From: Macrostomum lignano
Taxonomy: Eukaryota
Length of the DNA stretch: 45,560 nt
Direction: 5' to 3'
NCBI GenBank assembly: GCA_002269645.1
Contig: NIVC01002190.1
Coordinates: forward strand, 149,327 to 194,886
Shown here: piece after piece, positions 12,620-39,333 of the stretch
How the letters are laid out: each line of letters opens with the position of its first letter
Position numbering within the stretch: position 1 is the stretch's first letter
Notes under the pieces: generated by a model
What the model saw: only the letters and a program-made list of their open reading frames with translations
What the model was told of the DNA's origin: nothing
Databases searched by the model: none
Program-made: the position numbers and the translations under genes

Positions 12620-13870
12620 TAACTGGGGTTTGGGAACTGGGTTAGGGAACCGGGGTTAGGGAACTGGGGTTAGGGATGGGGGGTTGGGGAACTGGGGTTA
12701 GGGATGGGGGTTGGGGAACTGGGGTTACGGATGGGGGGTTGGGGAACCGGGGTTAGGGGACTGGGGTTGGGGAACTGGGGTTGGGGAACTGGGGTTGGGG
12801 AACTGGGGTTAGGGATGGGGGGTTGGGGAACTGGGGTTGGGGAACTGGGGTTGGGGAACTGGAATTGGGGAACTGGGGTTGGGGAACTGGGGTTAGGGAT
12901 GGGGGGTTGGGGAACTGGGGTTAGGTATGGGGGTTGGGGAACTGGGGTTAGGGATGGGGGGTTGGGGAACCGGGGTTAGGGAACTGGGGTTGGGGAACTG
13001 GGGTTGGGGAACTGGGGTTGGGGAACTGGGGTTGGGGAACTGGAATTGGGGAACCGGGGTTGGGGAACTGGGGTTGGAGAACTGGAATTGGGGAACCGGG
13101 GTTGGGGAACTGGGGTTGGAGAACTGGAATTGGGGAACTGGGGTTGGGGAACTGGGGTAGGGGAACTGGGGTTGGGGAACTGGAATTGGGGAACCGGGGT
13201 TGGGGAACTGGGGTTGGGGAACTGGGGTTGGGGAACTGGAATTGGGGAACCGGGGTTGGGGAACTGGGGTTGGGGAACTGGGGTTGGGGAACTGGAATTG
13301 GGGAACCGGGGTTGGGGAACTGGGGTTGGAGAACTGAAATTGGTGAACCGGGGTTGGGGAACTGGGGTTGGAGAACTGAAATTGGTGAACCGGGGTTGGG
13401 GAACTGGGGTTGGGGAACTGGGGTAGGGGAACTGGGGTTGGGGAACTGGAATTGGGGAACCGGGGTTGGGGAACCGGGGTTGGGGAACTGGGGTAGGGGA
13501 ACTGGGGTTGGGGAACTGGAATTGGGGAACCGGGGTTGGGGAACTGGGGTTGGGGAACTGGGGTTGGGGAACTGGGGTTGGGGAACTGGAATTGGGGAAC
13601 CGGGGTTGGGGAACTGGGGTTGGAGAACTGGAATTGGGGAACCGGGGTTGGGGAACTGGGGTTGGAGAACTGGAATTGGGGAACCGGGGTTGGGGAACTG
13701 GGGTTGGAGAACTGGAATTGGGGAACCGGGGTTGGGGAACTGGGGTTGGGGAACTGGGGTTGGGGAACTGGAATTGGGGAACCGGGGTTGGGGAACTGGG
13801 GTTGGAGAACTGGAATTGGGGAACCGGGGTTGGGGAACTGGGGTTGGAGAACTGGAATTGGGGAACTGGG
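12620..13870. repeat. G-rich 7/14-bp minisatellite (GGGGAACTGGGGTT / GGGGAACTGGAATT)n
   Basis: Fills Y-box intron 2; units at the left end contain TTAGGG. Confidence 0.97.
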
Positions 13871-13891
13871 CAGGCACCAAAGAGCTCTAAC

Positions 13892-14226
13892 CGGCGGTCC
13901 GTCTCCGCCCCGACCGCCGTAGGGCCGTCTACGGCTGCGGCCGCCTCTGAACCGCCGTCCGCCGCGCCTCTCGGACGCGTACTCGCTGCCCTGGACGGCG
14001 GCCCCGTCCGGCCCGGTCACATTGGTGGCTTCCTCGCCTTTGGGCCCTTGTACAACGTCGAATTCGACTCGTTCGTTTTCGCCGACGCTGCGCTTCCACT
14101 TAGCCGGGTTGTTCTTGGCAATGGCGGACTGGTGCACAAACACGTCCTGCTTGGTGTCGTCCCTGTTGATGAAGCCGTAGCCATTCTTCACGTTGAACCA
14201 CTTGACTGTGCCGGACACGCTTGTTG
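13892..14226 (-). CDS. YBX1: Y-box protein, exon 2 (cold-shock domain)
   Basis: Poly-C tract plus tag|CA acceptor (phase 1, the position recalled for vertebrate YBX1); [15 protein letters not shown] (RNP1), VFVHQSAI (RNP2), VEFDVVQG...VTGPDG; donor CCG|GTTAGA. Confidence 0.95.
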
Positions 14227-14339
14227 CTAGGGGGGGGGAGGGGGCAGCGGCAGACACTAGAGATTTTGATATAGTACTATGAGTAGTCTATTGGAACTGA
14301 GACAGACACATTTCAAAAGCTCTGAATTTCACAAATTGT

Positions 14340-17235: not shown

Positions 17236-20200
17236 TACAACAAACAAAAACAAAATACGCTACTCCGCACGCAAAGTCACATTTAGAGTAGGGCGCGTCA
17301 GATGGCGCGCCGCAGAGTCTGGGAGCGAATGAAGTCCGCTTCGTTGGCAGTGTCGTGCGCCCCAGCGTCGCACGGCAGGCAGTCCGCGTATCGACGGGTT
17401 CGGGCCTGACCCCGCCTGAAGGGGCCCTGCAAGGTGAGCAATAAGACGTCCTGAACAGGTTAGGGGCAGTAGCCCTCGGCCCGGATCACGTGGCCCGCCA
17501 GTTGTAGTCGCCGCCGGCGCAGGATGGTGGACGGGCGCTGCAGCTTGGCCCGATCGTACAGGGTCTCGGTCCCGATGCTCTCGTCAGCTCGAAGCACGGA
17601 ACAGCCCTGAGTGCGCCGAGTCCAGCTACCGCTCTAGCGTAGCTGTCAGCGTCCACGTCTCGGTGTTGTATAGCAGCAGGACGGTTTCGACTACCGCCTG
17701 CCACAGCCGAGCCCTCTGGTGGTCGCGGGCAGCGCTTCGGATTGGACGACGGCCCGGATCGAGCGGAAGGCCGCCCAGGCAAGTCCTCTGCGCCGCCGGA
17801 GGTCTTCCTCCACGTGAGGCACCAGACCACCGAGGTAGGTGAACCGCTGGCAGCGTGCGAGCTTGGTCGTCTGCCCGTTTGCGCCGCGGCACGTCAGGTC
17901 CGCTGGGATGTCGGCCGGCACAGTCAGCACCTCGGTCTTCAGCGTGTTGACAACCAGACCGATGCTCGATGCCACCTGGACCAGCCTGTCGATCTGGCGC
18001 TGGGCTCCTTCAACGGACGAAGACGCCGTGGCTTTTCGCCGTGGCGGCGACTGATGCGTCTGCGCAGCAGGAAGCCGTCGTAAGCCGAGGGGAGAGCGGT
18101 CCGAAGCACTCAGTCCAGCAGCAGCACGAAGAGGAACGGCGCCAGCGTGTCGCCCAGCAGAACTCCTGATGAAGTGTCGAACAGGTCAGACAGGCCGTCC
18201 GCCGTCGCCTCAGCAGCTCGAGTGTCGCAATACAGCGCCATGACAGCATCGACTAGCTGCTGGGGTACCCGATAGGCTCGAAGGACAAAGGGAAGCGCGG
18301 CTCTCAACACCAAGTCAAATGCCTTTCGAAAGTCAACGAAGACAATGATCAGCGTAGACTGGCGGATGCGCGCCTCCTCGATGACAAGGCGGAGTGCGAG
18401 GATCCGTGTCACTGACCACGCTGCGGCCGGAATACGTTCTGCTCATACCGCAGGTACGGATCCAGCACCGACTGGAGACGATCGAGCAGCAGCCGGTTGA
18501 AGAGCTTCGCGGTGCAGGACTTCAGCGAGATCCGCGGTGGTCTGCTTTCCGCGTTGTCCCTGCCTTCTTCGGGATCGGCACGATGTGCGCGACGGTAAAC
18601 TCGGTGGGCGCGGGGGCGCCGGCGAGCACGCGATTCATGACGCCTGTGACCTGGAAGGCCACATAGCGGAGCCGCAGCGCCTCGACCGGGACTTCGTCGG
18701 GACGAGTGCCTTGCCGCCTGATGTTTTCCGAGCGAACAGCACAACGTCCTCTGTGGTGACTGGGCTGGTGCAGAAGTCCTCCTCAGCTGGGAGCGGCGTG
18801 TCCAGTGGAAGCGCAAAGCTGACGGGCAGCGGCAACGCGGGCGCGTTCACGATGCCGACGAAGAAGTCGCGCAATTCGTTCCTGCGCTCCTCCAAGGTGT
18901 CACCGGCCAGATTCAGCGCCACGCGCTTTTTGCGCCCGTCATAGACCGGACGGCCGTCCACACTGCGCGGCTCTTCACGTCTGGGCCGGCTGCAGTGATG
19001 GACCTAACGGCGTCGTCGACAGCGGCCTGCTGCCGCTCGTCTAGAAGGCGCTCAAATGCGTCTTCAGCGTCGCCCGTGGGCCGCCGGTTTCTGCGGAGTC
19101 GCTCGATGTTGAGCCGCGCTTGCCTGATGGTCGGGTCGCTCTGCCAGACAGGCAGCGATTTTTGCGCTGGCCGCATCAGCGGGACCGTCTGCTCCGCAGC
19201 GGCTCTAACGGCGGTGCTGATGTCGGAATACTCCGTCTCACGCTGGTCTCCAAGCGCGCCAACGAAGGCACCCTCGAATTGACGCTTGACGCGGGTGTCC
19301 AACAGAGCGCGATAGTAGCGCCGTGGCCGCTGCTTTGGCGGTCGGTAGAGATGGTCGCGGAGCCGCAAGTCGCAGAGCAGAAGTCGATGGTCTGACCGGA
19401 GAGCCAGTGGAGCCATGGTGTCGCAGTTGGTGACGCGGCGGCGCTCGCGAGTGCGAACCAGCGCATGATAGAGTTTCGCCAGTCTCCTCGCATGGCGTTT
19501 CGCCCGCGTGCGTTTCGCCGCCTTCTCTTGCAGCCCGCAAAGGTAACCAGGCGGGCAGTGGGCTTGCAGAACTAGGTGTTCGCGGACACCAGGTCCAGCC
19601 GGTCAAGCAGGTCCTCCAGTGCATCGGTGTTGGCGTTCTCGCGTCCCGCGACAAAGGGCAAGCGCTCGGACCTCTGCAGGACTGCGTTCAGGTCTCCAAG
19701 CACTGCCAGTGTGTCGCGGTTTGGCACCTCTTCCAGCTGCCCAGCTAGGAAGTCGAAGAAGGCACGAGCCTCACCGAGCAGCCGAATGCAGCGGGCGCGC
19801 AGTCGCAGGTAGACCCGCATCAGTCGCGGGGACAGCGAGATGCAGTGTACGCTCTGCTGGAGGCGCGGTCCGATCAGTACGCTGACACCGCCCCGGCCGC
19901 GGTCGTCTGTCGACGTGTACAGGAGGCTCCAGCCGGCTCCAAGGTCCTCAGAGTGGAGCCCCCGCTCAGCCACGATAGAGACCTCCTGCAGCGAGAGGAG
20001 GTCCAGCTGTAGGTCGTGGGCCAGCTGGACAAGGATGGTGCGACGCCAGGGGGCCTTCAGAGTTCGGCATGCCGTGCCGAGCCTGAGGCGGCCACCTGGT
20101 ACAGCTGGGGCCAGATGGAGGTTGGCCTCGTGGTCCCCGGTGCCACCCGGCGGATCCATAGTTCAAGTTGCAGGGACTGGGGGCGACAGGCGCCTGGCCG

Positions 20201-20330
20201 CGCCACGGAGTCGCCCTCGCCGGTTGCGCTCGCGCCACCGCTCAGTCCGACGTTGCACTGCGCCGACCTCTGCGAGTCCCTGCTGTACTGAACTTTGCTG
20301 CCGCAGCCGAAGCGCGGCCGTCCGAGCCAA
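17236..20330 (-). mobile_element. Degenerate RTE-type non-LTR retrotransposon (APE endonuclease + reverse transcriptase), multiply frameshifted
   Basis: APE motifs (LRLGT..RTL, LQEV, VLGDLNA) at 19572-20159; RT motifs (ISLKSCTAKLFNRLLLDRL, EQNVFRPQR, VFVDFRKAFD, GVLLGDTLAPFLF, GLVVNTLKTEV, FTYLG) at 17690-18500; TTTGT-like tail near 17240. Ends are approximate. Confidence 0.92.
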
Positions 20331-20859
20331 CCGAGGTCATCCCCGGCATGATGATCTGGCCGCGATGCCAAGAGATGTCAGCACTATTGCACGGGTGTGC
20401 AAATATAATGTCTCGGGCACATTATGGTACATTATGTATACATGATACATTATGCTGATTATAGCATTCGTCACGTCGCAGAATCGGTCCATATCGGTCC
20501 ATAACCCTTTGGCCATTGAAGCCACGATCGAAAGAGTAATTAGCTACATACTACAAGTAGTATAACCGTATATGCTCGGTATTTTTCACCAACGATACAA
20601 AAGAAAAACTTATAGGATTTTGCCCAGCTATCCAATATCTTCAAAAAGAGACGACACAACTAGCTGAAGGGTAAATCTAAGGATAATGATTGTTAGCACT
20701 TGGAGCAGGGTAAAGTAATTAAATATTTATTTAAAATTATGCCCGATCCGCATTGATGCTCCCGGTTGGCCGAAAAACGACTGGTCGAGTTTTTGCGATA
20801 ATACGCGTCACTGCACTGGCTGCATCCAGTACAGCAAGTAGCGCAACCAGAAATTTGTT

Positions 20860-21372
20860 GAGGGGGCGGATTCTGGAGGGTAAAAACCCACAGGGTTGGG
20901 GGCGGATTCTGGAGGGTAAAAACCCACAGGGTTGGGGGCGGATTCTGGAGGGTAAAACCCCACAGGGTTGGGGCGGATTCTGGAGGGTAAAACCCCACAG
21001 GGTTGGGGGCGGATTCTGGAGGGTAAAACCCCACAGGGTTGGGGGCGGATTCTGGAGGGTAAAACCCCACAGGGTTGGGGGCGGATTCTGGAGGGTAAAA
21101 CCCCACAGGGTTGGGGGCGGATTCTGGAGGGTAAAACCCCACAGGGTTGGGGCGGATTCTGGAGGGTAAAACCCCACAGGGTTGGGGGCGGATTCTGGAG
21201 GGTAAAACCCCACAGGGTTGGGGGCGGATTCTGGAGGGTAAAACCCCACAGGGTTGGGGGCGGATTCTGGAGGGTAAAACCCCACAGGGTTGGGGGCGGA
21301 TTCTGGAGGGTAAAACCCCACAGGGTTGGGGGCGGATTCTGGAGGGTAAAACCCCACAGGGTTAGGGGCGGA
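20860..21372. repeat. 36-bp minisatellite (GGGGGCGGATTCTGGAGGGTAAAACCCCACAGGGTT)n
   Basis: About 14 units differing mostly in homopolymer length. Confidence 0.95.
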
Positions 21373-22022: not shown

Positions 22023-23516
22023 CTAAGCTTTGGCATCGAGCTGCTTGGCTTCTCGTTCAGCGACCGTCCGCCTCAGGGCGCGAACAAACGCCGTCTCTTT
22101 GCGCACGTAGAAGTCGATCTTCAGCGCAGCGCTTCGTCTCTGATGAAGCTGCAGGCACTGCAGCAGGTTGACGTCCTTGTAGAAGAAGTGCGGCAGATTG
22201 CCTGAGCGCATGTGGTCGCGCACGCAGGACAGGATGTCGCTGGTGTAGTGCGCCAGGTTGGCCCGCTGCCAGCGGATGCCTACTAGATCAATCTCCGTCT
22301 CGGCCAGGTGGAACATCACGTGCTTCAACATGTCACGGCTGACGCATCGCAGCTCTGGCTGCTCGCGACAGAACTCTGTCAGGCCTCTCCACACACGCAG
22401 CCGGAGGCCTCGATCCGCTCGTGATAACGACTGCATCAGCAGAGCCTCCTCCATTGAATACTGCACTGTCCACAAGTCTTGGCCCAGCGAACCCTTGCTG
22501 CCAAAGGAGTAGGGCCGGGGCGTGAGGTACGCGTGCTCATCACTTGGATACCTGATGACTGGCATGAACCTCAGGTGCAGAACACGGGTAGTCACCTCCG
22601 GGACTTTGCCTCGCCTGCGTCTATTCGAAATGTACACCACGGTTGCCGGGATACCAGGCTCTAGAATGTCGGGCACGGCGTCATCCTCTGCAGCCTCATC
22701 TTCTTCCACATTCTCCTCCTCTTGAGGGTCTTCTTCAGCCTCAGGTACAGCGTCCTCCACATGAATGGCAAAGGAAACAGGATCCTGCTCATCGTCAGCA
22801 CCCGAGGCGTCTGACTTTCCTGGAGGCGGTGCCGCCAGTTGAGTGTCGAGATACCTGGACGTCACGGTCAGTGTGACATCAATTGAGCCGGCTTCCCTAT
22901 TTATCTCCACCTGCTGGACGGTGAGATCGCTTTCGTAACGCGCAGAAATTTGCTGCATGGCATTGTTCACCAACTTCCAAGTGGACTTCAGAGTGACAGA
23001 TGAAGACACGTAGCGCTTGGACGACTTCAGAAAGTCAAGCGGATCTTTTTCGAAAGTAGGCGGCTTCTGTCTGACTGCTGGGATTTTTATCCCAATTAGG
23101 CCCGGGCCGCCTTCCGGTTGGATTCGCAGCGTATTGCCCTGGGGCAGGCGGAGTGGCAGTAGGATTTCGAGGCGCTCGTCCTCACCCCAAACCAGATCCT
23201 CGGGGGTGGACGCCACCACAGGTGTCTCGTAATTGATTCTATAGTTATTAACGTGCAGCTTGTAGTACATCTCCTGACAGATGCGGTCGAGGTAACGTCG
23301 GGTCTCCTGGAAGCTGGCCTCCGCATCGGTGGAAACGAACGTCGGACATAACCGTTCCAGGGCTTCCGCTGCTGGCGATGGTTCCTCAATGATGGTCTTC
23401 TCACTGGTTAGGCCATTGAAGAGCACTCGGCCGGGGTCTCTGGCTGCGTCTCCAGAACTGCTAGCTGGGATCTGGTGACCGTACGACCGGTTTTTCGCGT
23501 TTGACTTTGTCTTCAT
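22023..23516 (-). CDS. Mab-21/cGAS-like nucleotidyltransferase-fold protein (MiD49/51-like, probably catalytically inactive), 497 aa, intronless
   Basis: C-terminal Mab-21 helical lobe (LWTVQYSMEE..L..LSRADRGLR...LKHVMFHL...W...L...GNLPHFF...VNLL) and N-terminal NTase-like segment (STPEDL...RLEILLPLRL); fully open 1494-nt ORF. Confidence 0.8.
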   Translation of the reverse strand: MKTKSNAKNRSYGHQIPASSSGDAARDPGRVLFNGLTSEKTIIEEPSPAAEALERLCPTFVSTDAEASFQETRRYLDRICQEMYYKLHVNNYRINYETPVVASTPEDLVWGEDERLEILLPLRLPQGNTLRIQPEGGPGLIGIKIPAVRQKPPTFEKDPLDFLKSSKRYVSSSVTLKSTWKLVNNAMQQISARYESDLTVQQVEINREAGSIDVTLTVTSRYLDTQLAAPPPGKSDASGADDEQDPVSFAIHVEDAVPEAEEDPQEEENVEEDEAAEDDAVPDILEPGIPATVVYISNRRRRGKVPEVTTRVLHLRFMPVIRYPSDEHAYLTPRPYSFGSKGSLGQDLWTVQYSMEEALLMQSLSRADRGLRLRVWRGLTEFCREQPELRCVSRDMLKHVMFHLAETEIDLVGIRWQRANLAHYTSDILSCVRDHMRSGNLPHFFYKDVNLLQCLQLHQRRSAALKIDFYVRKETAFVRALRRTVAEREAKQLDAKA

Positions 23517-26500
23517 GCCTCTTTTCGGCTGCCTTTCTGGGTAGAGTTTCTGATTCTCCCCCGTTTTGGCACCTCAACTCTCAGAGTAGACAGCAGGCCC
23601 CACTTCCAACCGCACGAACAAACGCAGTGTTGCCAAGGCAAAGTAGACGCGGTTGGGTTGGCAAGTTTTAATAAGAGCCGGTGAGAGAAATACTGGAGAA
23701 GAAGTTATTCTCAAGACTGGCCCTTGCATCAGGTGCACAAGGTAAGACTTCTAATTCAGTTTTAAAGCGCTTGCTGCTAGCCGGTCTTCTCTCCTCTGTC
23801 TTCCACAGTTGGCCAAGAACAATGAGGCGGTGTAGGAAGGAAAGCTCCAGCTGGGAGGCTGTAGCGGAGCAGATTAGTTTAGGGCCTGACAGAGCGCAGG
23901 GCATCAGAGTAGCTACAGTAGAGTGCACGGTTAGCGATGGCTAAGAAAGATTTTCGCTAATAAGGACTTAAGAGCGCGTTGAACCAGTGTAAGATAATCG
24001 AGCAAGTTTCTTCTCTGCAGGCTGTTGAGTACAGTTGAGCATTGCTCTTTTACCTGCTAATGATAGTGTCCGACGGCTGGTTGCAACGTGAGGGATTCAA
24101 TTGCCATAAAATGGTTGCGACTGGGGCGAGAGTTTGAACAAAATGGGGCGGATATGGGCCCAGTTTAAGGACTTGCCTCAGGACTGGCGTTAAAAGAGAG
24201 AATTTTCCTTCATCCTCCCCGGGGGGACAGAGTCTCAATTGTTTGCCTACCTTTTGGACTGCACTTTCCATCAGCCTAGATGCAGCAAGCAACTAACGGC
24301 TCCCATGCAGCATCATGGCCTATAAAAAAACTTCCCACGCTCTTTCAGTGGATTACGGAATTTCTTTTGCTAAACTAGGAATTGAAGTGGCATCGGAAAG
24401 GGAGAGAAGGCCCACGCTCTTATAGAAATCCATAAGTTAACTTTAAAAAATAAAATTGTAAAGTACAACACTCAAAAAGGGAATTAAAATTATGGTAGCA
24501 CAACAAATTATGGAGCTAAAAAGACAGTCTATAAAAGCAGGATGAGGCTCTTGCAGCAGGGCAGTACTAAATCTAAAAAATCTATAGAAGCTCTGTGGAT
24601 TATATAATCATCAGTTCAATATAATCATTCAATAATAATCAATCACGTACATTTGCGCATGTCTTGTGCCTAAAAAACATTAAAATAGCGCAGCTCGGCT
24701 CTTATGGTTTTATGAGTTTATTTTATCATTCTTAGCTGACTGTGTAACAATTAAATATGCGTAGCACAAATGATAAAATGGATTCATGAAACCAATGATT
24801 TGGAGCTGTGCGATGCATTTTTATTACTTTTAGGTACAGGAAATGTACTTAGAATAAAAAATTAACATAGAATCCTAATTTTCTGAACGAAAAGATTTAT
24901 GAACATCGATTGAGCAATAAGAAAGGCACAACATATCAAAATATGAACACTGGACTCTGCCTCCTATAAAAACAAGAACAATTTTTGCGCTGAAAAAATG
25001 AAAACTTCCTATCTCCGTAGTGCATTTTTTGAAAAAACCTGCCTACTACATTTTTTTAAGAAACGAGGTTTTGGCCCGTCCTAAGTCGTCCTTGGTATCT
25101 GGGTATCTGTATGGCCAAATGATTGTTTAGTCAGCCCAATCCGGCAATCTGGTTTTTTAAATCTTCTCACTCCTAACTGATTTTTTTGATAAAGAAAAAG
25201 AATGATAAAATGCATAGAAATATATATTTCTTAATTTAAATAATACCTAGTGCCTTAGTCTAAGGAACTGTGTTTTACTATTAAATTGCAGACTTTTGAA
25301 TTCACGAAACAACACATCGTAATGCATGCGGGTCGTTCGCAAATTCTAGGAGGAGCAAAAATTTTAACAATTTTCCGAACATTTACTATTGTTACTGCCA
25401 TATTGAAAATAATAGGACACTTTTATCTGTGAATAAAGATAATTTTTGGGTTAAACTTTATCATGCAAAAGTGTTTTTTAATCATCTGGCGGTATTAAGC
25501 GATAATTAGCGATGAAAAAATTCAAATTCAATCATTTCACCGATGTTAATTTTTGGTACTACAAGATGTCTGTAGCTAAAAAAAAGTTGTTGTTGTGTTG
25601 AAACCTTGCTATATTACATTTAAAATTAAAGCTTATATAAATTTAATTTAAGATTTTTTTAAAGCTCAATAAACTGCACTATAAATGATTTTATAGACGC
25701 TTAACTGTACGCCTAGCATTTCCGGTGGGATAGCCTCTTTGCGTCTCACAAAATGTATTTTTTCAGCTGACGTCTAGAATGTGCGCTTAAAATGATACAT
25801 TTTGATGCAGATAATTAGAAAAACATGTCTTTTTATCTTTTTGTAAAAAATTGTTATGAAATAGAGCACTATTGTTGATAAAAATAATTAAAAGCAACCA
25901 TGCATCGCAATAAACTCCTACTTTGAAGCACAAAATAAATATCCTGTAACCACACTAGCATTCTCCATGGAGCACCTTTTGAGCTGAAATTTTAAACAGA
26001 TATTCAGTAAAGTAAACTGAGCAAATGATTTTTTTTGTTTTTGAAAATACTTCAATTTGGCTATGTATCAGTTAGTACATTGGACATATTTATTATATTT
26101 TTATTAAAATCCTTGTAACCAAGCTACAGAGAAACATGTGCAAAACTGGACCTTGAAATTTGACCTGAATGATCAGCAAATGTGTATCTCGAAATGATTT
26201 TTTTTGTTTTCATCAAGTCATTCTATGCTAATTTTTTCTGAAGGTAAAGATACCATATATTTAGAGTCAATAGGGGAAGCATTTAGACTTATTCAATAGT
26301 CATTAAAATTGCAACTATATTATTATAATATAGTAATAATATTATACATGTATTATATAGTAATATTAACTTCTAAGATGCCCTTATAAATTTAAGTAAA
26401 GACAACAGGCCTTAATTAATTAATCAGCATTTTGAAGAAACTGACCTTATACAGATGGGCCCCAAGCTAAGAAATGAATGTAGAGCTTATTTCGTGTAAG

Positions 26501-29361
26501 GTATAAAAATCAATTTATTAAAATATTAAATACTTCTAATAAATTGGTTAAATTAGTTATTTACCTTGAATTAATTTAATTTTAATAATTAAATATATAA
26601 ATTTGTTTCACTTCTTACTGCATTTAAATAGAGTACCTCTCTACTATACTATAGAAGTATAGTAAAAGTACATGGTAAAAAAGTATAGTAAAAAATTTTC
26701 TTTGGTTTAATCCCAGCTTGCCTCAGTTTTTTAGTCTTAATACGAGCTAGATAGTAAGTGTTGATTAATTTGCTCCATCACCTTTTGCCACGGAAACAGC
26801 ACATGTCGGACATGCAACACTCTTCCTGATCCCTGGATTCAAGATGACTGCTTCTGCTTCTTCAATGCTTGAAAACTGAGCTCATGGAGCTTTAGGTTAT
26901 GCTGTCAGAGTGCTGCTGCCGGTGCTGTGTGTGTATGTGTGTGTCTTCTGCGGGTAGGTTCCATGTCCCTCAGTTTAGCCACTGTTGTGGGCTAACTGGA
27001 GGAATTGCCGTTGTCGGTGCTGCAGGTGGCACTGCATGGTAGTATTGACGCTGTCAGTGATGCTGGCAAAGGCTTGGACGAAGCTAGGTGCCGTCATTGT
27101 CAGAAGGACATGCGTGTGCTGCTTAGACCAGTGCGCACATTCGACTGGACTCGTATCTGGTGCAGTCTGGTGTATTCACTGAGATTGTGTGGATCTGCCT
27201 CCTCGCATCACCTCAACCAGGCTCAATTTCTTTTGTAGAATTTTCGTGCGCTGCTTAACTGCATCTTGTGCCTGCTGAGTGATGCCAAGAATTGTGCCAC
27301 ACAATAATTTGGCCCATAAACTACTCGTATATTATACATATGTATGCACAGCACACACACACGCAGTTCATTCATATTAAATGTACTAGTTAATGGAATT
27401 CTCATCTCATGAGCTCTAGTCTATGGACAAACCTGAAATTACTAGAATATCTAGATAGATCTAAACTTCTTTGAGCAGCGCGTTGCGCTGCGAGCAAAAT
27501 ACATGTAGATTCCTTAGCGCAACTAATTAATAGTGTAGTACAGTCTACAGCCTGAAGTAGCCTGTGTAAGATGCGGAGGGATGATTTTTGCATAGGAAGC
27601 CACTACGGTAAGGTTGATGGAACTATGGGGAGGTGAGAGATTCAAAGCGAGGGACGGAAGCCATGCATAGTTCGATCATAAGTTTGATTATTCCATGAGT
27701 CTGGGGATGCATTAACGAGAGGCGGACGAGAGCATAGAAATAAAGCGGGCTAAATATATTAATACACAAAATTACATGTACTAGCTAGTAATTTCAGAAT
27801 GGTCAGCGACTCCTCCGATTTGTATCCGCGACCGCGTGCCCACAAATCCCCCGGCAGACCCTGTCGCAGTTGGTGGTTGTGCACAGAATACAATGTTAAT
27901 TTTCGAGCTTCTCTGCAAAAAATGCGTGATGCACTCAAGATGCGTGCTATAGTCTACTTCTTTGATTGATGGCTGGGTTTTGCCTTTTCGCTTGTGATCA
28001 TCAAAAGCTTGGGCGTCATTGCTACTGGTGTTTCAGTGTGCGCATTATGTCTGGTTATCATATTATGTGCATGTGCAGTGTCTTTTACCTACATTTTTGT
28101 TTGTCTCTGTTTCCTGCATGCTCTTTCGCATTTTTACACCTCGCACACCCTCATTTTTCTCAATTAACAAGTGAAATCTTTTTTTAAAGACTAACTGCTA
28201 TTTTAGTTAAGCTAGTAGGTTTTTGGTAATTAAATAATTCAATTTTGTCTATTTTCCAAAAAGTTTCAAAAAATGAATTGATTAAATAAATTTGAATTAT
28301 TTTAAGTTAATTGGAGTAAAATGTCTAATAAGTAACTATAATTTTTTATTTTAAGTACATGCAGCTTTGGTATAAGTATTAATGTAATAAGTACTTAAAG
28401 TAAAATCAAGCAAGTTATAGTTTTCAGAAATTATGCTACAAATAATCAAATATATACTAGAATCCGAATTCCTTTATTAAGGAACATGCAGTTGATATTA
28501 AATCCACAATGTGCTTTTTGGTGTTCAAGGATAGTTCCCTGACTTTTTCTATTATTAGTTAGATTTTATTATATTTAATGTAAAAATGAACAATTCTATT
28601 CACCGTAAAAATGAACATTCTTTATTTGTCGAATCATCTTGACTTTGAAAAGATACATAGTGAAAACTTGATTTTTAATTCAACTTTTCAAGACTTATTT
28701 AGACTTCTTAATTCAGTGATTAGTTAAACTGATCGAAGTCCTTTCGAGTGCATGCTATAATAATTTCGCACTTTTTCGCACACGATAATTTTAAATGTCT
28801 GGGATTTAGAGCAGAGTAACAAAATGCTGTGCTCAAAAACATTTCCTTTGTCAATTTCTTGTTCTTTTATTTTTGCAAAAGAAATTTAACTGCATATTTA
28901 AAATAAAAATAGAAGAAAATCTCTTTAATATTTTTGTCGTTTATTTTCCGCAACAAAGAATAACAAATAGCCTTGATTTCTTCTCAATTTCAAGTTTTCT
29001 TGTGGTTTTAGTAGCAGCTTCTTACAGAAATTGTCGAAATAATTTTTTTTGTACGATTATTGGTCGATGTATAAACTTTTTTTGCAATAACAAAAAGTTG
29101 TGACCTAGCTTTGAGAACGACCCATGCACCATGTAAACTAGACTCTGCACGTTTCTTATCTAATTTTTGCTATTTTTAATTTTTTTATACTGTTTATATC
29201 TGAACTAGTTAATTATCCACTACTTTAAAAAATAACCATAGGCCCAGGCCTATTCGATTCACGAAATTAGAAAAATCTGTGACTTATGATTATAAATAAC
29301 TGAATATAGCCACTAGTTCCACTACTTGACTTAGCTATCTTATTATTGTTCTTTCTATTTG

Positions 29362-30139: not shown

Positions 30140-30845
30140 AGGGGTAAGTCGCAAAATTGAGTCAACCAAAAACAGAAAAACACAAGAATTAAGAAAGGCA
30201 AGAGGAAAGCGAAAGAAAGTGCAGTTCAGGGAAAATGGTGATGCAAAAGAAAAACAATTCGCAAAAGAAGCAAACTAAGTTATAAAAATAATCAGGTAAG
30301 TCGCAAAAAGGATCAGGTAAGTCGCAAAAGAAGCAAACTAAGTCACAAAAAGGATCAGGTAAGTCGCAAAAAGGATTAGGTAAGTCGCGAAAAGGATTAG
30401 GTAAGTCGCAAAAAGGATTAGGTAAGTTGCAAAAGGGTTAGGTAAGTTGCAAAAAGGATCAGGTAAGTCGCAACAAGAATCAGGTAAGTTGCAAAAGGAT
30501 CAGCTAAGTTGCAAAAGGATTAGGTAAGTTGCAAAAAGGATTAGGTAAGTCGCAAAAAGGATTAGGTAAGTCGCAAAAAGAATCAGGTAAGTCGCAAAAG
30601 GATCAGCTAAGTCGCAAAAGGATTAGGTAAGTCGCAAAAGGGTTAGGTAAGTCGCAAAAGGATTAGGTAAGTCGCAAAAGGGTTAGGTAAGTCACAAAAA
30701 GGATTAGGTAAGTCGCAAAAAGGATTAAGTAAGTCGCAAAAAGGATTAGGTAAGTTGCAAAAAGGATTAAGTAAGTTGCAAAAAGGATTAGGTAAGTCGC
30801 AAAAAGGATTAGGTAAGTCGCAAAAAGAAGCAACTAAGTCGCAAT
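30140..30845 (+). repeat. 20/21-bp minisatellite (AGGTAAGTCGCAAAAAGGATT)n carrying the 5' splice-site consensus
   Basis: About 21 copies of AGGTAAGT counted on the HAGH sense strand, plus one more at ~32299. Confidence 0.95.
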
Positions 30846-31002
30846 AAGAGGGAAGTAAGTCACAATCAGAGGCAATCAGGGGGTAGTAGGTGCAAGTGTG
30901 GCAGGAGAGCAAAAACAGAATAGAAGCCTTCAACAACAGACAAGATCTTTAAAATCAGAAGCCTGCATCAACAGTTTCCCATTGATTTCTTAAACTCTGG
31001 AG

Positions 31003-38622: not shown

Positions 38623-39333
38623 GAGTCAGCCGTAGTGGATCCAGTCGAGCCGAAAAAAATTCTTCCCTACCTGCGCGAGCGCGGCCTGTCGCTAAAGTAC
38701 ATCCTGACCACGCACAGCCACGCTGACCACGCCGGCGGCAACTCGCTTCTGCTCCAGCTGCTGCAGGCCGACGGCGCCCCCAAGCCGCAGGTGTGCGGCG
38801 GCGGCAGCAAAGTGCAATCGGTCAGCCGGCTGGTGTCGCACAACGAGTCGCTGGAGCCGCTGGGCTCGGCCATCAGCATCCGGTGCCTGCACACGCCCTG
38901 CCACACCCAGGACCACATCTGCTACCTGGTCGAGCGCCCCGGCCACAGCCCGGCCGTGTTCACCGGCGACACGCTCTTCATTGCCGGCTGCGGCCGCTTC
39001 TTCGAGGGCTCGCCGGAGCAGATGTGTGCCAACCTGCTGGACACGCTGGGCCGCCTGGCCCCGGACACCCGGGTGTACTGCGGGCACGAGTACACGCGCA
39101 AGAATCTGCAGTTCGCCGCCAGCGTTGAGCCCGACAATGCGGACGTGCGCGCCAAGCTGGAGCGCTGCTTGGCCAGCCCGGACTCGCCGACCATCCCCAG
39201 CACCATCGGCGAGGAGCTGCTCACCAATCCGTTCATGCGGGTTGGCGAGTCGGCCGCTCTGCAGCGATGCGCCGGCAGCAGCGACCCCGTGAAGGTGATG
39301 GCCGCGCTGCGCAAGCAGAAAGACAGTTTCTGA
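38623..39333 (+). CDS. HAGH: Glyoxalase II, exon 2 (metallo-beta-lactamase domain and C-terminal domain)
   Basis: ctccctcacag|GAG; AVVDPVEP, THSHADHAGGN, HTPCHT, FTGDTLFIAGCGRFFEG, VYCGHEYT, PSTIGEELLTNPFMR, RKQKDSF*. Confidence 0.95.
   Translation, partial: ESAVVDPVEPKKILPYLRERGLSLKYILTTHSHADHAGGNSLLLQLLQADGAPKPQVCGGGSKVQSVSRLVSHNESLEPLGSAISIRCLHTPCHTQDHICYLVERPGHSPAVFTGDTLFIAGCGRFFEGSPEQMCANLLDTLGRLAPDTRVYCGHEYTRKNLQFAASVEPDNADVRAKLERCLASPDSPTIPSTIGEELLTNPFMRVGESAALQRCAGSSDPVKVMAALRKQKDSF

Follow-up and report, generated by a model that had tools for sequence, protein, structure and literature searches.

The locus analyzed here raises the question of what a protein with a cGAS/Mab-21 fold might do when its catalytic residues have gone. 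We examined a 45,560-nucleotide stretch of Macrostomum lignano DNA (the window), in which an earlier note, made from the letters alone, had recognized a pseudo-enzyme of this fold that resembled MiD49 and MiD51 and had no membrane anchor. That note suggested a soluble sensing adaptor, a dominant-negative cGAS-like receptor (cGLR) or an invertebrate MiD-like fission factor. Our results are most consistent with a soluble, catalytically dead Mab-21/cGAS-fold protein that serves as a non-catalytic binder or scaffold and is a very divergent flatworm member of an uncharacterised spiralian family. We put the probability of this reading at roughly 60%.

A single-exon gene

The complete coding sequence lies at 22023..23516 on the minus strand, as a single exon of 497 codons with Met1 at 23514-23516 and a TAG stop at 22023-22025. 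Its product is 99% identical to the M. lignano protein NCBI BOX15_Mlig005510g1, which is annotated with the same single exon and the same start and is labelled Mab-21-like by UniProt auto-annotation. The 497-residue frame and the residues on which the earlier description was built (A102-S103, R115-L116-E117 and R316) were all where they had been placed, and the segments it quoted are present: RICQEM (78-83), EDL (106-108), LEILLPLRL (116-124), LSRADRGLR (364-372), FCREQPEL (382-389) and VMFHLAETE (400-408). A tblastn search of the whole window found neither a second gene copy nor an extra exon. The identifier Mlig005510, looked up for experimental or expression data, was not found in the searchable literature.

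A predicted bilobed Mab-21 fold

We found that the proposed cGAS/Mab-21 fold is borne out by domain and structure comparisons. Pfam Mab-21_C (PF20266) matched residues 383-467 with 36.1 bits (cutoff 24.1; E 7.6e-9), and Pfam Mab-21 (PF03281) scored 14.5 bits on the N-lobe, under its cutoff of 24.1. When phmmer was run against the PDB, the best sequence match was Sp-cGLR1 (E 2.4e-4), with MiD51 at 2.3e-3. Two AF2 models were made, the second being a control in which MiD rows had been taken out of the MSA. Both gave a confident bilobed Mab-21 fold (pTM 0.76 and 0.73; 232-240 residues at pLDDT of at least 90). With either model, Foldseek returned a probability of 1.00 to MiD51, MiD49, cGAS and cGLRs, and the alignments to MiD51 and cGAS covered about 440-480 columns. 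Nothing matched in a viral structure library (best E 0.49).

The C-terminal helical lobe (aa 344-497; 22026..22487, minus strand) was modelled at pLDDT 90-98 and includes the Pfam Mab-21_C region (22116-22370). The family-invariant residues W349, E357, D368, R372 and W416 are all kept, and W349, E357, R372, W416 and an LPHFF motif are common to the query and cGAS/cGLRs. The N-lobe, comprising the NTase core and spine helix (aa 46-235; 22812..23381, minus strand), was modelled in blocks mostly at pLDDT 75-95, with helices at 63-88 and 172-193 and strands at 116-122, 131-134, 140-144, 198-206 and 211-220. This lobe was not detected in the full database search, in which 49/49 matches from exhaustive phmmer aligned to residues about 290-495. 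A BLASTP comparison with the relative P0011 aligned 103 aa of the N-lobe at 30% identity. As judged from the predicted structures, the protein is a member of the Mab-21/cGAS-like NTase-fold superfamily, the superfamily and bilobed fold to which Sp-cGLR1 (PDB 8gjy) and cGAS also belong.

Loss of the catalytic residues

The description of a degenerate catalytic set was confirmed by an L-INS-i alignment of the query with mouse MiD51 and the active coral Sp-cGLR1, in which R-E-R stands in place of E/D-D-D and the GS glycine is gone. R115 aligned with MiD51 H201 and the cGLR catalytic Glu, E117 with MiD51 Q203 and the cGLR catalytic Asp, and R316 with MiD51 D311 and the catalytic Asp of Sp-cGLR1. 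A separate BLASTP alignment to P0011 gave an identical register for R115 and E117. The degenerate [DE]h[DE] strand (aa 115-117, R-L-E; 23166..23174, minus strand) lies within predicted strand 116-122, and Arg316, at the third catalytic-acid position (22569..22571, minus strand), within predicted strand 309-322. The third catalytic-acid column of the family contains N (14), H (6), E (5), K (2) and R (1).

What is left of the G-[GS] nucleotide-binding loop reads A-S-T (aa 102-104; 23205..23213, minus strand). In the family these columns hold G in 22/33 and S in 18/33 sequences; the corresponding residues are G188-S189 in MiD51 and G-S in Sp-cGLR1. The register is ambiguous by 1 residue, as MAFFT placed S103-T104 on G-S and the constant 12-residue spacing to the acid strand favours A102-S103, and the glycine is absent from the query under both. 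MiD51, the cGLR and 18/33 relatives have a phosphate-binding lysine at the position of MiD51 K368, where the query has a threonine (T380). Thus, at the level of aligned sequence, the features of an active cGAS or cGLR (carboxylate triad, G-[GS] loop and phosphate lysine) have all been lost.

It is highly improbable that the protein is nevertheless an active cGAS-like receptor whose catalytic site is built in a non-canonical way, for instance from E114/E117 together with another acid. E117 is indeed kept, and E112, D113 and E114 precede the acid strand. However, E114 sits at the position of MiD51 D200, a residue that leaves MiD51 inactive (Richter 2014, PMC3926961), triad positions 1 and 3 are both arginine, and the GS glycine and the K414/K368-type lysine are lost. 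Moreover, most platyhelminths reportedly have no predicted cGLRs apart from Mab21-like proteins (PMC9980059). The suggestion of a dominant-negative cGLR did not fare well either, as no partner for such a role is known.

Our results are better explained by a catalytically dead binder or scaffold. Two of the three metal-binding carboxylates have been replaced by arginine (R115 and R316), along with the loss of the GS glycine and of the phosphate-binding lysine (T380). Two-metal nucleotidyl transfer should then not occur, and we infer that the protein would therefore act by binding rather than by catalysis.

A putative arginine-lined cleft next to an acidic insert

The former active-site cleft is probably lined by R115, R316, R377 and R384, the last two at the positions of the MiD51 cleft residues K365 and K372. 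MiD51 uses His, Arg and Lys to hold ADP or GDP in the absence of Mg2+, and by analogy this arginine-lined cleft would be the place where an anionic ligand, bound independently of metal, or a partner protein is most likely to sit. In MiD51 the ADP/GDP phosphates are contacted by H201, R342, K368 and K372, binding does not require a metal, and recruitment of Drp1 is independent of the nucleotide (Richter 2014, PMC3926961). Two of these four contacts remain basic in the query (H201 to R115 and K372 to R384), and the other two are lost, S354 and T380 standing in for R342 and K368. Because of these two losses, nucleotide binding may be gone altogether.

These residues bear on a more specific possibility, that the protein is a metal-independent sensor of a nucleotide or other phospho-ligand, with the ligand in the arginine-lined cleft controlling the binding of a partner. 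We regard this as a tentative idea with a modest chance of being correct. The retained basic contacts R115 and R384, the exchange of K365 for R377 and the extra positive charge of R316 are what such a sensor might have, and MAB21L1 offers a precedent, as it binds NTPs with sub-micromolar affinity and without detectable catalysis (PMC4897736). On the other hand, the best-conserved phosphate lysine (MiD51 K368) has become threonine and R342 serine, and the glycine of the GS loop is lost. The loss of this lysine also weakens the note's suggestion that the protein senses nucleotides or nucleic acids.

Other proteins of this fold also work by binding. The shrimp Mab21 proteins LvMab21-1/2/3 act by binding IKK-epsilon and do not synthesize cyclic dinucleotides (PMC12928593). 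For these and for MAB21L1/2, all with the Mab-21 fold, no nucleic-acid-induced cyclic dinucleotide synthesis has been found, and protein or ligand binding has been reported (PMC12928593, PMC4897736). We saw no affinity of the query to these proteins at the level of sequence. MAB21L1 matched our family profiles only at E 9e-19 to 3e-27 and was not within the top 50 Foldseek matches.

Between strands 211-220 and 309-322, in a hairpin adjoining the third catalytic position, the query carries an acidic insert of 66 residues (aa 236-301; 22614..22811, minus strand). The insert contains 23 acidic and 3 basic residues, ends in RRRRGK (299-304) and was predicted to be disordered (pLDDT <50 in both AF2 models). 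It appears to be lineage-specific, as the alignment shows no counterpart in MiD51, the cGLR or the other relatives. The idea of an unspliced in-frame intron found no support: the GC content is the same as in the rest of the coding sequence, and we saw neither donor- nor acceptor-like signals. A shared origin with the inserts of nemertean proteins was rejected, since those precede the first of three strands and that of the query lies in the hairpin of the second and third. Speculatively, the acidic stretch and RRRRGK may mask or regulate the basic cleft, or may recruit basic partners.

MiD-like in predicted shape, without the features that define MiD51

The proposed resemblance to MiD49/51 held for shape and was not supported for family membership. 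MiD51 and MiD49 are the solved folds nearest to the query and made up the top 23-24 Foldseek matches for both models (E 6e-14 to 1e-10, top about 1e-13; TM on target 0.68-0.78). They lead cGAS (E about 1e-10) by some 3 orders of magnitude in E-value and by roughly 0.1 in TM; TM values to cGAS and cGLRs were 0.54-0.68. The ranking persisted in the model built without MiD sequences. All of the segments quoted as recalling MiD51 fell in register with their partners (5/5 pairs, L-INS-i). Like the query, MiD51 has a non-acidic first triad position (H201, as R115) and no long insertion of the Zn-thumb type, which in cGAS and Sp-cGLR1 lies between the third strand and W349. Identity in the structural alignments to MiDs was only 13-15%.

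Several features that mark a MiD are missing from the query. Pfam MID51-like_C (PF21297) gave no match to it at E<=10, a search in which HMMER filters may hide very weak matches, whereas a genuine MiD, the shark MIEF1-like protein P0034, scored 269 bits (E 3e-80). Two of the four ADP contacts have gone, and MiD51 retains Asp311 at the third triad position, where the query has arginine. Conversely, MiDs have neither the 66-residue acidic insert nor the N-terminal E-K-T element of the query. The Drp1-recruitment loop of the MiDs (PEYFP/LEFCP) and the associated R235-D249 salt bridge are not recognisably kept; in the L-INS-i alignment DPLDF lies under PEYFP, F155 under R235 and K164 under D249.

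MiDs also carry an N-terminal outer-membrane anchor, and we found no transmembrane segment in the query, in agreement with the earlier note. The highest 19-residue Kyte-Doolittle mean was 0.81, compared with 2.11 (at residue 29) for P0034. The N-terminal family element (aa 30-41, RVLFNGLTSEKT; 23394..23429, minus strand) aligned with "FPGLINExT" in nemerteans and with "SPR[RK][IV]x[FY]EKT" or "YLPxLHRQxT" in annelids and molluscs. By this alignment, the N-terminus of the query is homologous to those of its relatives, which likewise have no transmembrane anchor. An upstream exon encoding an anchor, which the note had advised looking for, is probably not missing: the relatives' homologous N-termini are anchor-less, an in-frame stop lies 27 codons upstream of Met1, and the NCBI model has a single exon. 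A reading of the N-terminal element as an RVxF/PP1-docking motif was set aside; the motif is enriched over shuffles, yet its last position is too variable.

Overall, the protein is MiD51-like in predicted shape and lacks what defines MiD51.

Relatives of the query

The database relatives that scored best (E 7e-14 to 1e-6) are uncharacterised Mab-21-like proteins of annelids, molluscs and nemerteans. They include proteins of Lineus longissimus (XP_064620936.1), Tubulanus polymorphus (XP_074650445.1), Owenia fusiformis (CAH1797558.1), Lamellibrachia satsuma (KAI0220627.1) and Capitella teleta (ELU07615.1), and a Haliotis protein labelled "cGAS-like". Weaker relatives came from starfish and amphioxus. 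Word-indexed homology searches were near-empty (2 matches with the query alone, 3 with the family profile and 8 with the relative P0006); exhaustive phmmer was informative.

We found that the spiralian relatives are soluble like the query and share with it an "...E-[KQA]-T" element and the invariant core residues. Their third triad position is also non-acidic; it is arginine in the Lineus protein too and lysine in P0011 and P0026. Defining the spiralian Mab-21-like family by "...E-[KQA]-T" together with W349, E357, D368, R372 and W416, the query is a member on sequence grounds. It is a divergent one: overall identity to the spiralian relatives is only 17-23%, and G-S, [DE]-x-D and the phosphate lysine are retained by most of them, whereas the query has lost all three.

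A family profile built without MiD or cGLR rows was equally near cGLR, MiD51 and cGAS; the best PDB match was Sp-cGLR1 (4e-32), with MiD51 at 1.6e-30 and MiD49 at 2e-10. Another profile, which contained a real MiD49 row (A1) and reached MiD51 at 1e-51, was set aside as biased. In a neighbor-joining tree with 200 bootstraps the MiD pair was recovered at 100% and the cGLR rows at 91%, and the query was placed with only 32-38%. This weak placement is due to the long branch of the query, and the tree was therefore left out of the classification.

These comparisons make it improbable that the protein is a soluble MiD49/51-like adaptor, that is, an invertebrate counterpart that uses the loop following strand 140-144 to bind Drp1 and is not itself anchored in the outer membrane. 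Such an adaptor would fit the lead of MiD51 and MiD49 in Foldseek with both models and the missing thumb insertion. It would also fit the rank of P0034 (E 3.3e-6), which came above cGLR-like rows in the exhaustive search, and the label MIEF1 given by one source to the amphioxus protein P0043. The putative loop region is of similar length, with 44 residues from the acid strand to the "YxSS" helix in the query and 45 in MiD51. Read without gaps, R149-x-x-P152-x-x-F155 pairs with MiD51 R235-x-x-P238-x-x-F241. However, that pairing depends on the register and disagrees with L-INS-i, in which the salt bridge is not kept. The missing anchor, the missing MID51-like_C match, the MiD-free profile (as near to Sp-cGLR1 as to MiD51) and a tree without a supported MiD grouping all argue against a MiD adaptor, as does the description of MIEF1 as vertebrate-specific (PMC3160255).

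A broader proposal, which we consider doubtful, joins the query, the spiralian proteins and those of starfish and amphioxus in one old bilaterian clade of Mab-21 pseudo-enzymes that are soluble and shaped like MiD. Vertebrate MiD49/51 would then be derived by gain of an anchor. Members might hold a phospho-ligand independently of metal, might use a MiD51-type loop and the conserved N-terminal E-K-T (RVxF-like) element to recruit a partner, of the dynamin family or another, or might do both. The starfish and amphioxus proteins are variously auto-labelled "cGAS-like" or "MIEF1".

We also considered that the gene could be a lineage-specific duplicate that is decaying or drifting neutrally and serves no conserved function, its active-site losses and low-complexity insert being products of relaxed selection. 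The M. lignano genome is rich in duplicated genes, which would favor such an origin. The branch is very long, the N-lobe escaped the full search, and the closest non-self match was a 199-aa M. lignano paralogue fragment with 34% identity; the exhaustive search found no orthologue of >34% identity outside M. lignano. The long branch and lack of a close orthologue also fit relaxed constraint. The window ORF and the NCBI copy are near-identical and differ by 4 non-synonymous and 2 synonymous changes, giving a dN/dS of 0.63, a value without power given only 6 changes. Against decay, both copies have an unbroken frame of 497 codons, the invariant core is kept and the models give the fold at high confidence. 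In addition, the changes cluster at functional pocket positions and are not spread across the core. We therefore think decay unlikely.

Significance

A dead, soluble binder or scaffold would be an unsurprising addition to a large, fast-evolving superfamily, and as the protein is already auto-annotated as Mab-21-like, we consider the finding to be of moderate value. Inactive proteins of the cGAS/Mab-21 fold are known to be re-used as adaptors, in mitochondrial fission (MiD49/51) and in kinase activation (shrimp Mab21), and cGLR signalling is reported to be largely gone from flatworms. A soluble Mab-21 protein with a putative arginine-lined cleft, in the tractable M. lignano, provides a route to the function of an uncharacterised spiralian branch, and it could help tell whether the MiD-like shape predates vertebrates.

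The gene and its locus

We found that the query protein is encoded by an intact gene, one continuous 497-codon ORF (22023-23516, minus strand) with an in-frame stop 27 codons upstream of Met1. Its full-length sequence shares 99% identity with the NCBI entry 'hypothetical protein BOX15_Mlig005510g1 [Macrostomum lignano]' (UniRef name, 'Mab-21-like HhH/H2TH-like domain-containing protein'), which identifies the window as nuclear DNA of a flatworm. The NCBI copy of the locus (L002) matches the window at ~99% identity, flanks included, and has the gene as one annotated exon between glyoxalase II-like and cold-shock-domain genes. The neighbors in the window agree with those gene calls: a cold-shock-domain protein (12893-14257, minus strand; CSD, E = 1.9e-25) and an exon of a hydroxyacylglutathione hydrolase/glyoxalase II-like gene (38635-39333, plus strand; HAGH_C, 1.3e-25; Lactamase_B, 3.6e-12). 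A tblastn search of the window for additional copies or exons of the query gene found none.

Approximately 3.8 kb of the window (25330-29122) is missing from the otherwise ~99% identical L002 (junction at L002 8181-8185). This extra DNA probably reflects the insertion of a transposable element or an indel between haplotypes. A 36-bp tandem array (20862-21372; 14.2 copies, 98% identity) lies ~650 bp downstream of the query stop codon and occurs in the NCBI copy too; because it is open in several frames, it produces spurious repetitive ORFs. A GC-rich block (63-65%; 19572-20159, minus strand, and neighboring ORFs, 18913-20445) looks like a fragment of a LINE-type retrotransposon. An ORF in it had a weak match to the endonuclease model Exo_endo_phos (21.3 bits, below cutoff). 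The stretch at ~30243-30865 is internally repetitive, giving numerous blastn matches between window and L002 that are staggered and 84-90% identical; it falls within the annotated extent of the glyoxalase II-like gene, in a region with strong GC and AT skew.

Fold and structural neighbors

The earlier note had proposed a Mab-21 fold, to be checked with AlphaFold and Foldseek, and both supported it. The Pfam model Mab-21_C matched at 36.1 bits, above its gathering score of 24.1; the model of the N-terminal Mab-21 NTase region gave 14.5 bits, below its cutoff. AlphaFold2, given an alignment of 41 rows, returned a confident model (pTM 0.76; 240 residues at pLDDT ≥ 90) with disorder only in residues 1-20 and 236-301. 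When this model was compared with the PDB using Foldseek, the membrane-anchored Drp1 receptors MiD51 and MiD49 took places 1-23 (E, 6e-14 to 1.5e-10; TM on target, 0.68-0.78), followed by cGAS and cGAS-like receptors (cGLRs; E, ~1e-10 to 1e-9; TM, 0.54-0.67). A search of a viral structure library gave no match.

Because the first alignment included one true MiD, we repeated the prediction as a control from 34 rows, all MiD and cGLR-like sequences having been left out. The pTM was 0.73 and the Foldseek order was the same, indicating that the resemblance of the predicted structure to MiD51 is real and robust. Part of the likeness arises because both proteins lack the long thumb insertion that cGAS and the active coral receptor Sp-cGLR1 have after the third core strand, ahead of the conserved Trp.

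Catalytic positions

The catalytic set is degenerate, as the earlier note had said. We aligned the query with mouse MiD51, Sp-cGLR1 and 40 relatives (L-INS-i). The MiD51 sequence was taken from a PDB alignment and numbered as chain index + 128, anchored on PEYFP (238-242). The residues and segments quoted in the note were all found at their positions, and its five query/MiD51 segment pairs were all in register. Three residues fell on the triad positions: R115 (MiD51 H201; first catalytic Glu of Sp-cGLR1), E117 (Q203; catalytic Asp) and R316 (D311; third catalytic Asp). A separate BLASTP alignment with a relative from the homology search, P0011, gave the identical register for R115 and E117. 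The glycine of the GS motif is lost whether the motif is placed at A102-S103 or S103-T104 (a one-residue uncertainty), and T380 replaces the phosphate-binding Lys (MiD51 K368). Catalytic and nucleotide-loop residues are both gone. With Arg in place of two of the three carboxylates and with the Gly and Lys lost, the protein, judged from its residues, is not an active cGLR. Set beside these losses, an active enzyme of a non-canonical kind is highly improbable. The dominant-negative cGLR suggested in the note would lack an obvious partner in light of Li et al.

Relatives and conservation

When 1.84 billion representatives were searched exhaustively with phmmer, only 49 matches reached E ≤ 1e-3, and all of them lay toward the C-terminus of the query (about residues 290-495). 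The top non-self match was an M. lignano paralogue fragment (199 aa, 34% identity). Other relatives came from annelids (Lamellibrachia, Owenia, Capitella), molluscs (unionid bivalves, Haliotis, Pomacea) and nemerteans (Lineus, Tubulanus), with weaker ones from a starfish and amphioxus. Many relatives retain G-S, [DE]-x-D and the phosphate-binding Lys, and their third position is occupied by Asn or His (of 33 rows: G 22, S 18, first acid 22, second acid 22, N/H 20, K 18). The query departs from the family residues at all of these positions and keeps all the invariant core residues (W349, E357, D368, R372 and W416). A drifting duplicate could account for the departures; the kept core and the uninterrupted ORF speak against it, and we consider it unlikely.

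The ambiguity sensed in the earlier note is general, since a single amphioxus cluster (P0043, Branchiostoma) is called 'MIEF1', 'positive regulation of mitochondrial fission', 'cGAS-like' or 'uncharacterized', depending on the source. Neither a TM segment nor a MID51-like_C match was found in this cluster. Public annotation was inconsistent across the part of the Mab-21 superfamily that holds P0043, P0020 (Asterias) and the P0021 cluster (Haliotis).

N-terminus and membrane anchor

The architecture is soluble. We found no TM segment in the query, in agreement with the note: its top hydropathy was 0.81, and that of P0034, a shark MIEF1-like protein from this set and a real MiD, peaked at 2.11 at residue 29. 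Throughout the family, a conserved element ('SPR[RK][IV]x[FY]EKT', 'YLPxLHRQxT' or 'FPGLINExT') precedes the spine helix. The query form, RVLFNGLTSEKT, occupies residues 30-41 (23394-23429, minus strand) in the alignment with relatives P0002-P0048. This shared element indicates that the query N-terminus is homologous to anchor-less N-termini. Given this homology, the upstream stop and the NCBI gene model, a missing upstream exon adding a TM segment is unlikely.

In the spiralian family, the element is often preceded, at a distance of 20-40 residues, by a basic K-V-R-[FLM] motif. RVxF-type (PP1-docking-like) patterns occurred in 9 of 34 N-termini (2.6 expected by shuffling); the form in the query is R30-V-L-F33.

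Comparison with the MiD proteins

Most of the features that define a MiD [Richter et al. 2014, PMC3926961] are lacking in the query. MiDs have a membrane anchor, whereas the query has none. Pfam MID51-like_C did not match the query, compared with 3e-80 for P0034. Of the four MiD51 contacts to the ADP/GDP phosphates, two stay basic in the query (R115 for H201, R384 for K372) and two are lost (S354 for R342, T380 for K368). The Drp1-recruitment loop is similar in length to that of MiD51, but PEYFP and the R235-D249 salt bridge have no recognizable conservation, and two plausible registers of the loop alignment disagree. In a search with a family profile built without MiD rows, Sp-cGLR1 (4e-32), MiD51 (1.6e-30) and cGAS (1e-27) were roughly level, and MiD49 reached only 2e-10. 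A neighbor-joining bootstrap tree left the long-branched query without placement. Based on these results we do not file the query as a MiD. A soluble Drp1 adaptor would draw on the MiD51-like shape and loop length; given the missing anchor and the absence of a MID51-like_C match, we think this quite improbable. The query does resemble MiD51 in shape and as a dead enzyme with a predicted basic cleft.

A putative binding function

We infer that the query acts by binding, without catalysis. By analogy with MiD51 and from the aligned residues, an anionic ligand that needs no metal, or a partner, might bind in the cleft that R115, R316, R377 and R384 are predicted to line. A sensor of a phospho-ligand is one possible form of this, favored by the arginines at two MiD51 phosphate contacts and disfavored by S354 and T380 at the others; we regard it as rather unlikely. 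A lineage-specific, acidic disordered insert (residues 236-301; 23 acidic and 3 basic residues, ending in RRRRGK) lies in the hairpin adjoining the third catalytic position and, speculatively, might regulate the Arg-lined cleft.

There are precedents for non-catalytic Mab-21 proteins: MiD51 [Richter et al. 2014, PMC3926961], shrimp Mab21 proteins, which activate IKK-epsilon [PMC12928593], and MAB21L1, which binds NTPs and has no detectable activity [PMC4897736]. The specific functions that the earlier note had proposed found no support. Its core reading, a Mab-21-fold pseudo-enzyme of MiD51-like shape without an anchor, was borne out, and the protein is a very divergent addition to the already known Mab-21-fold proteins.
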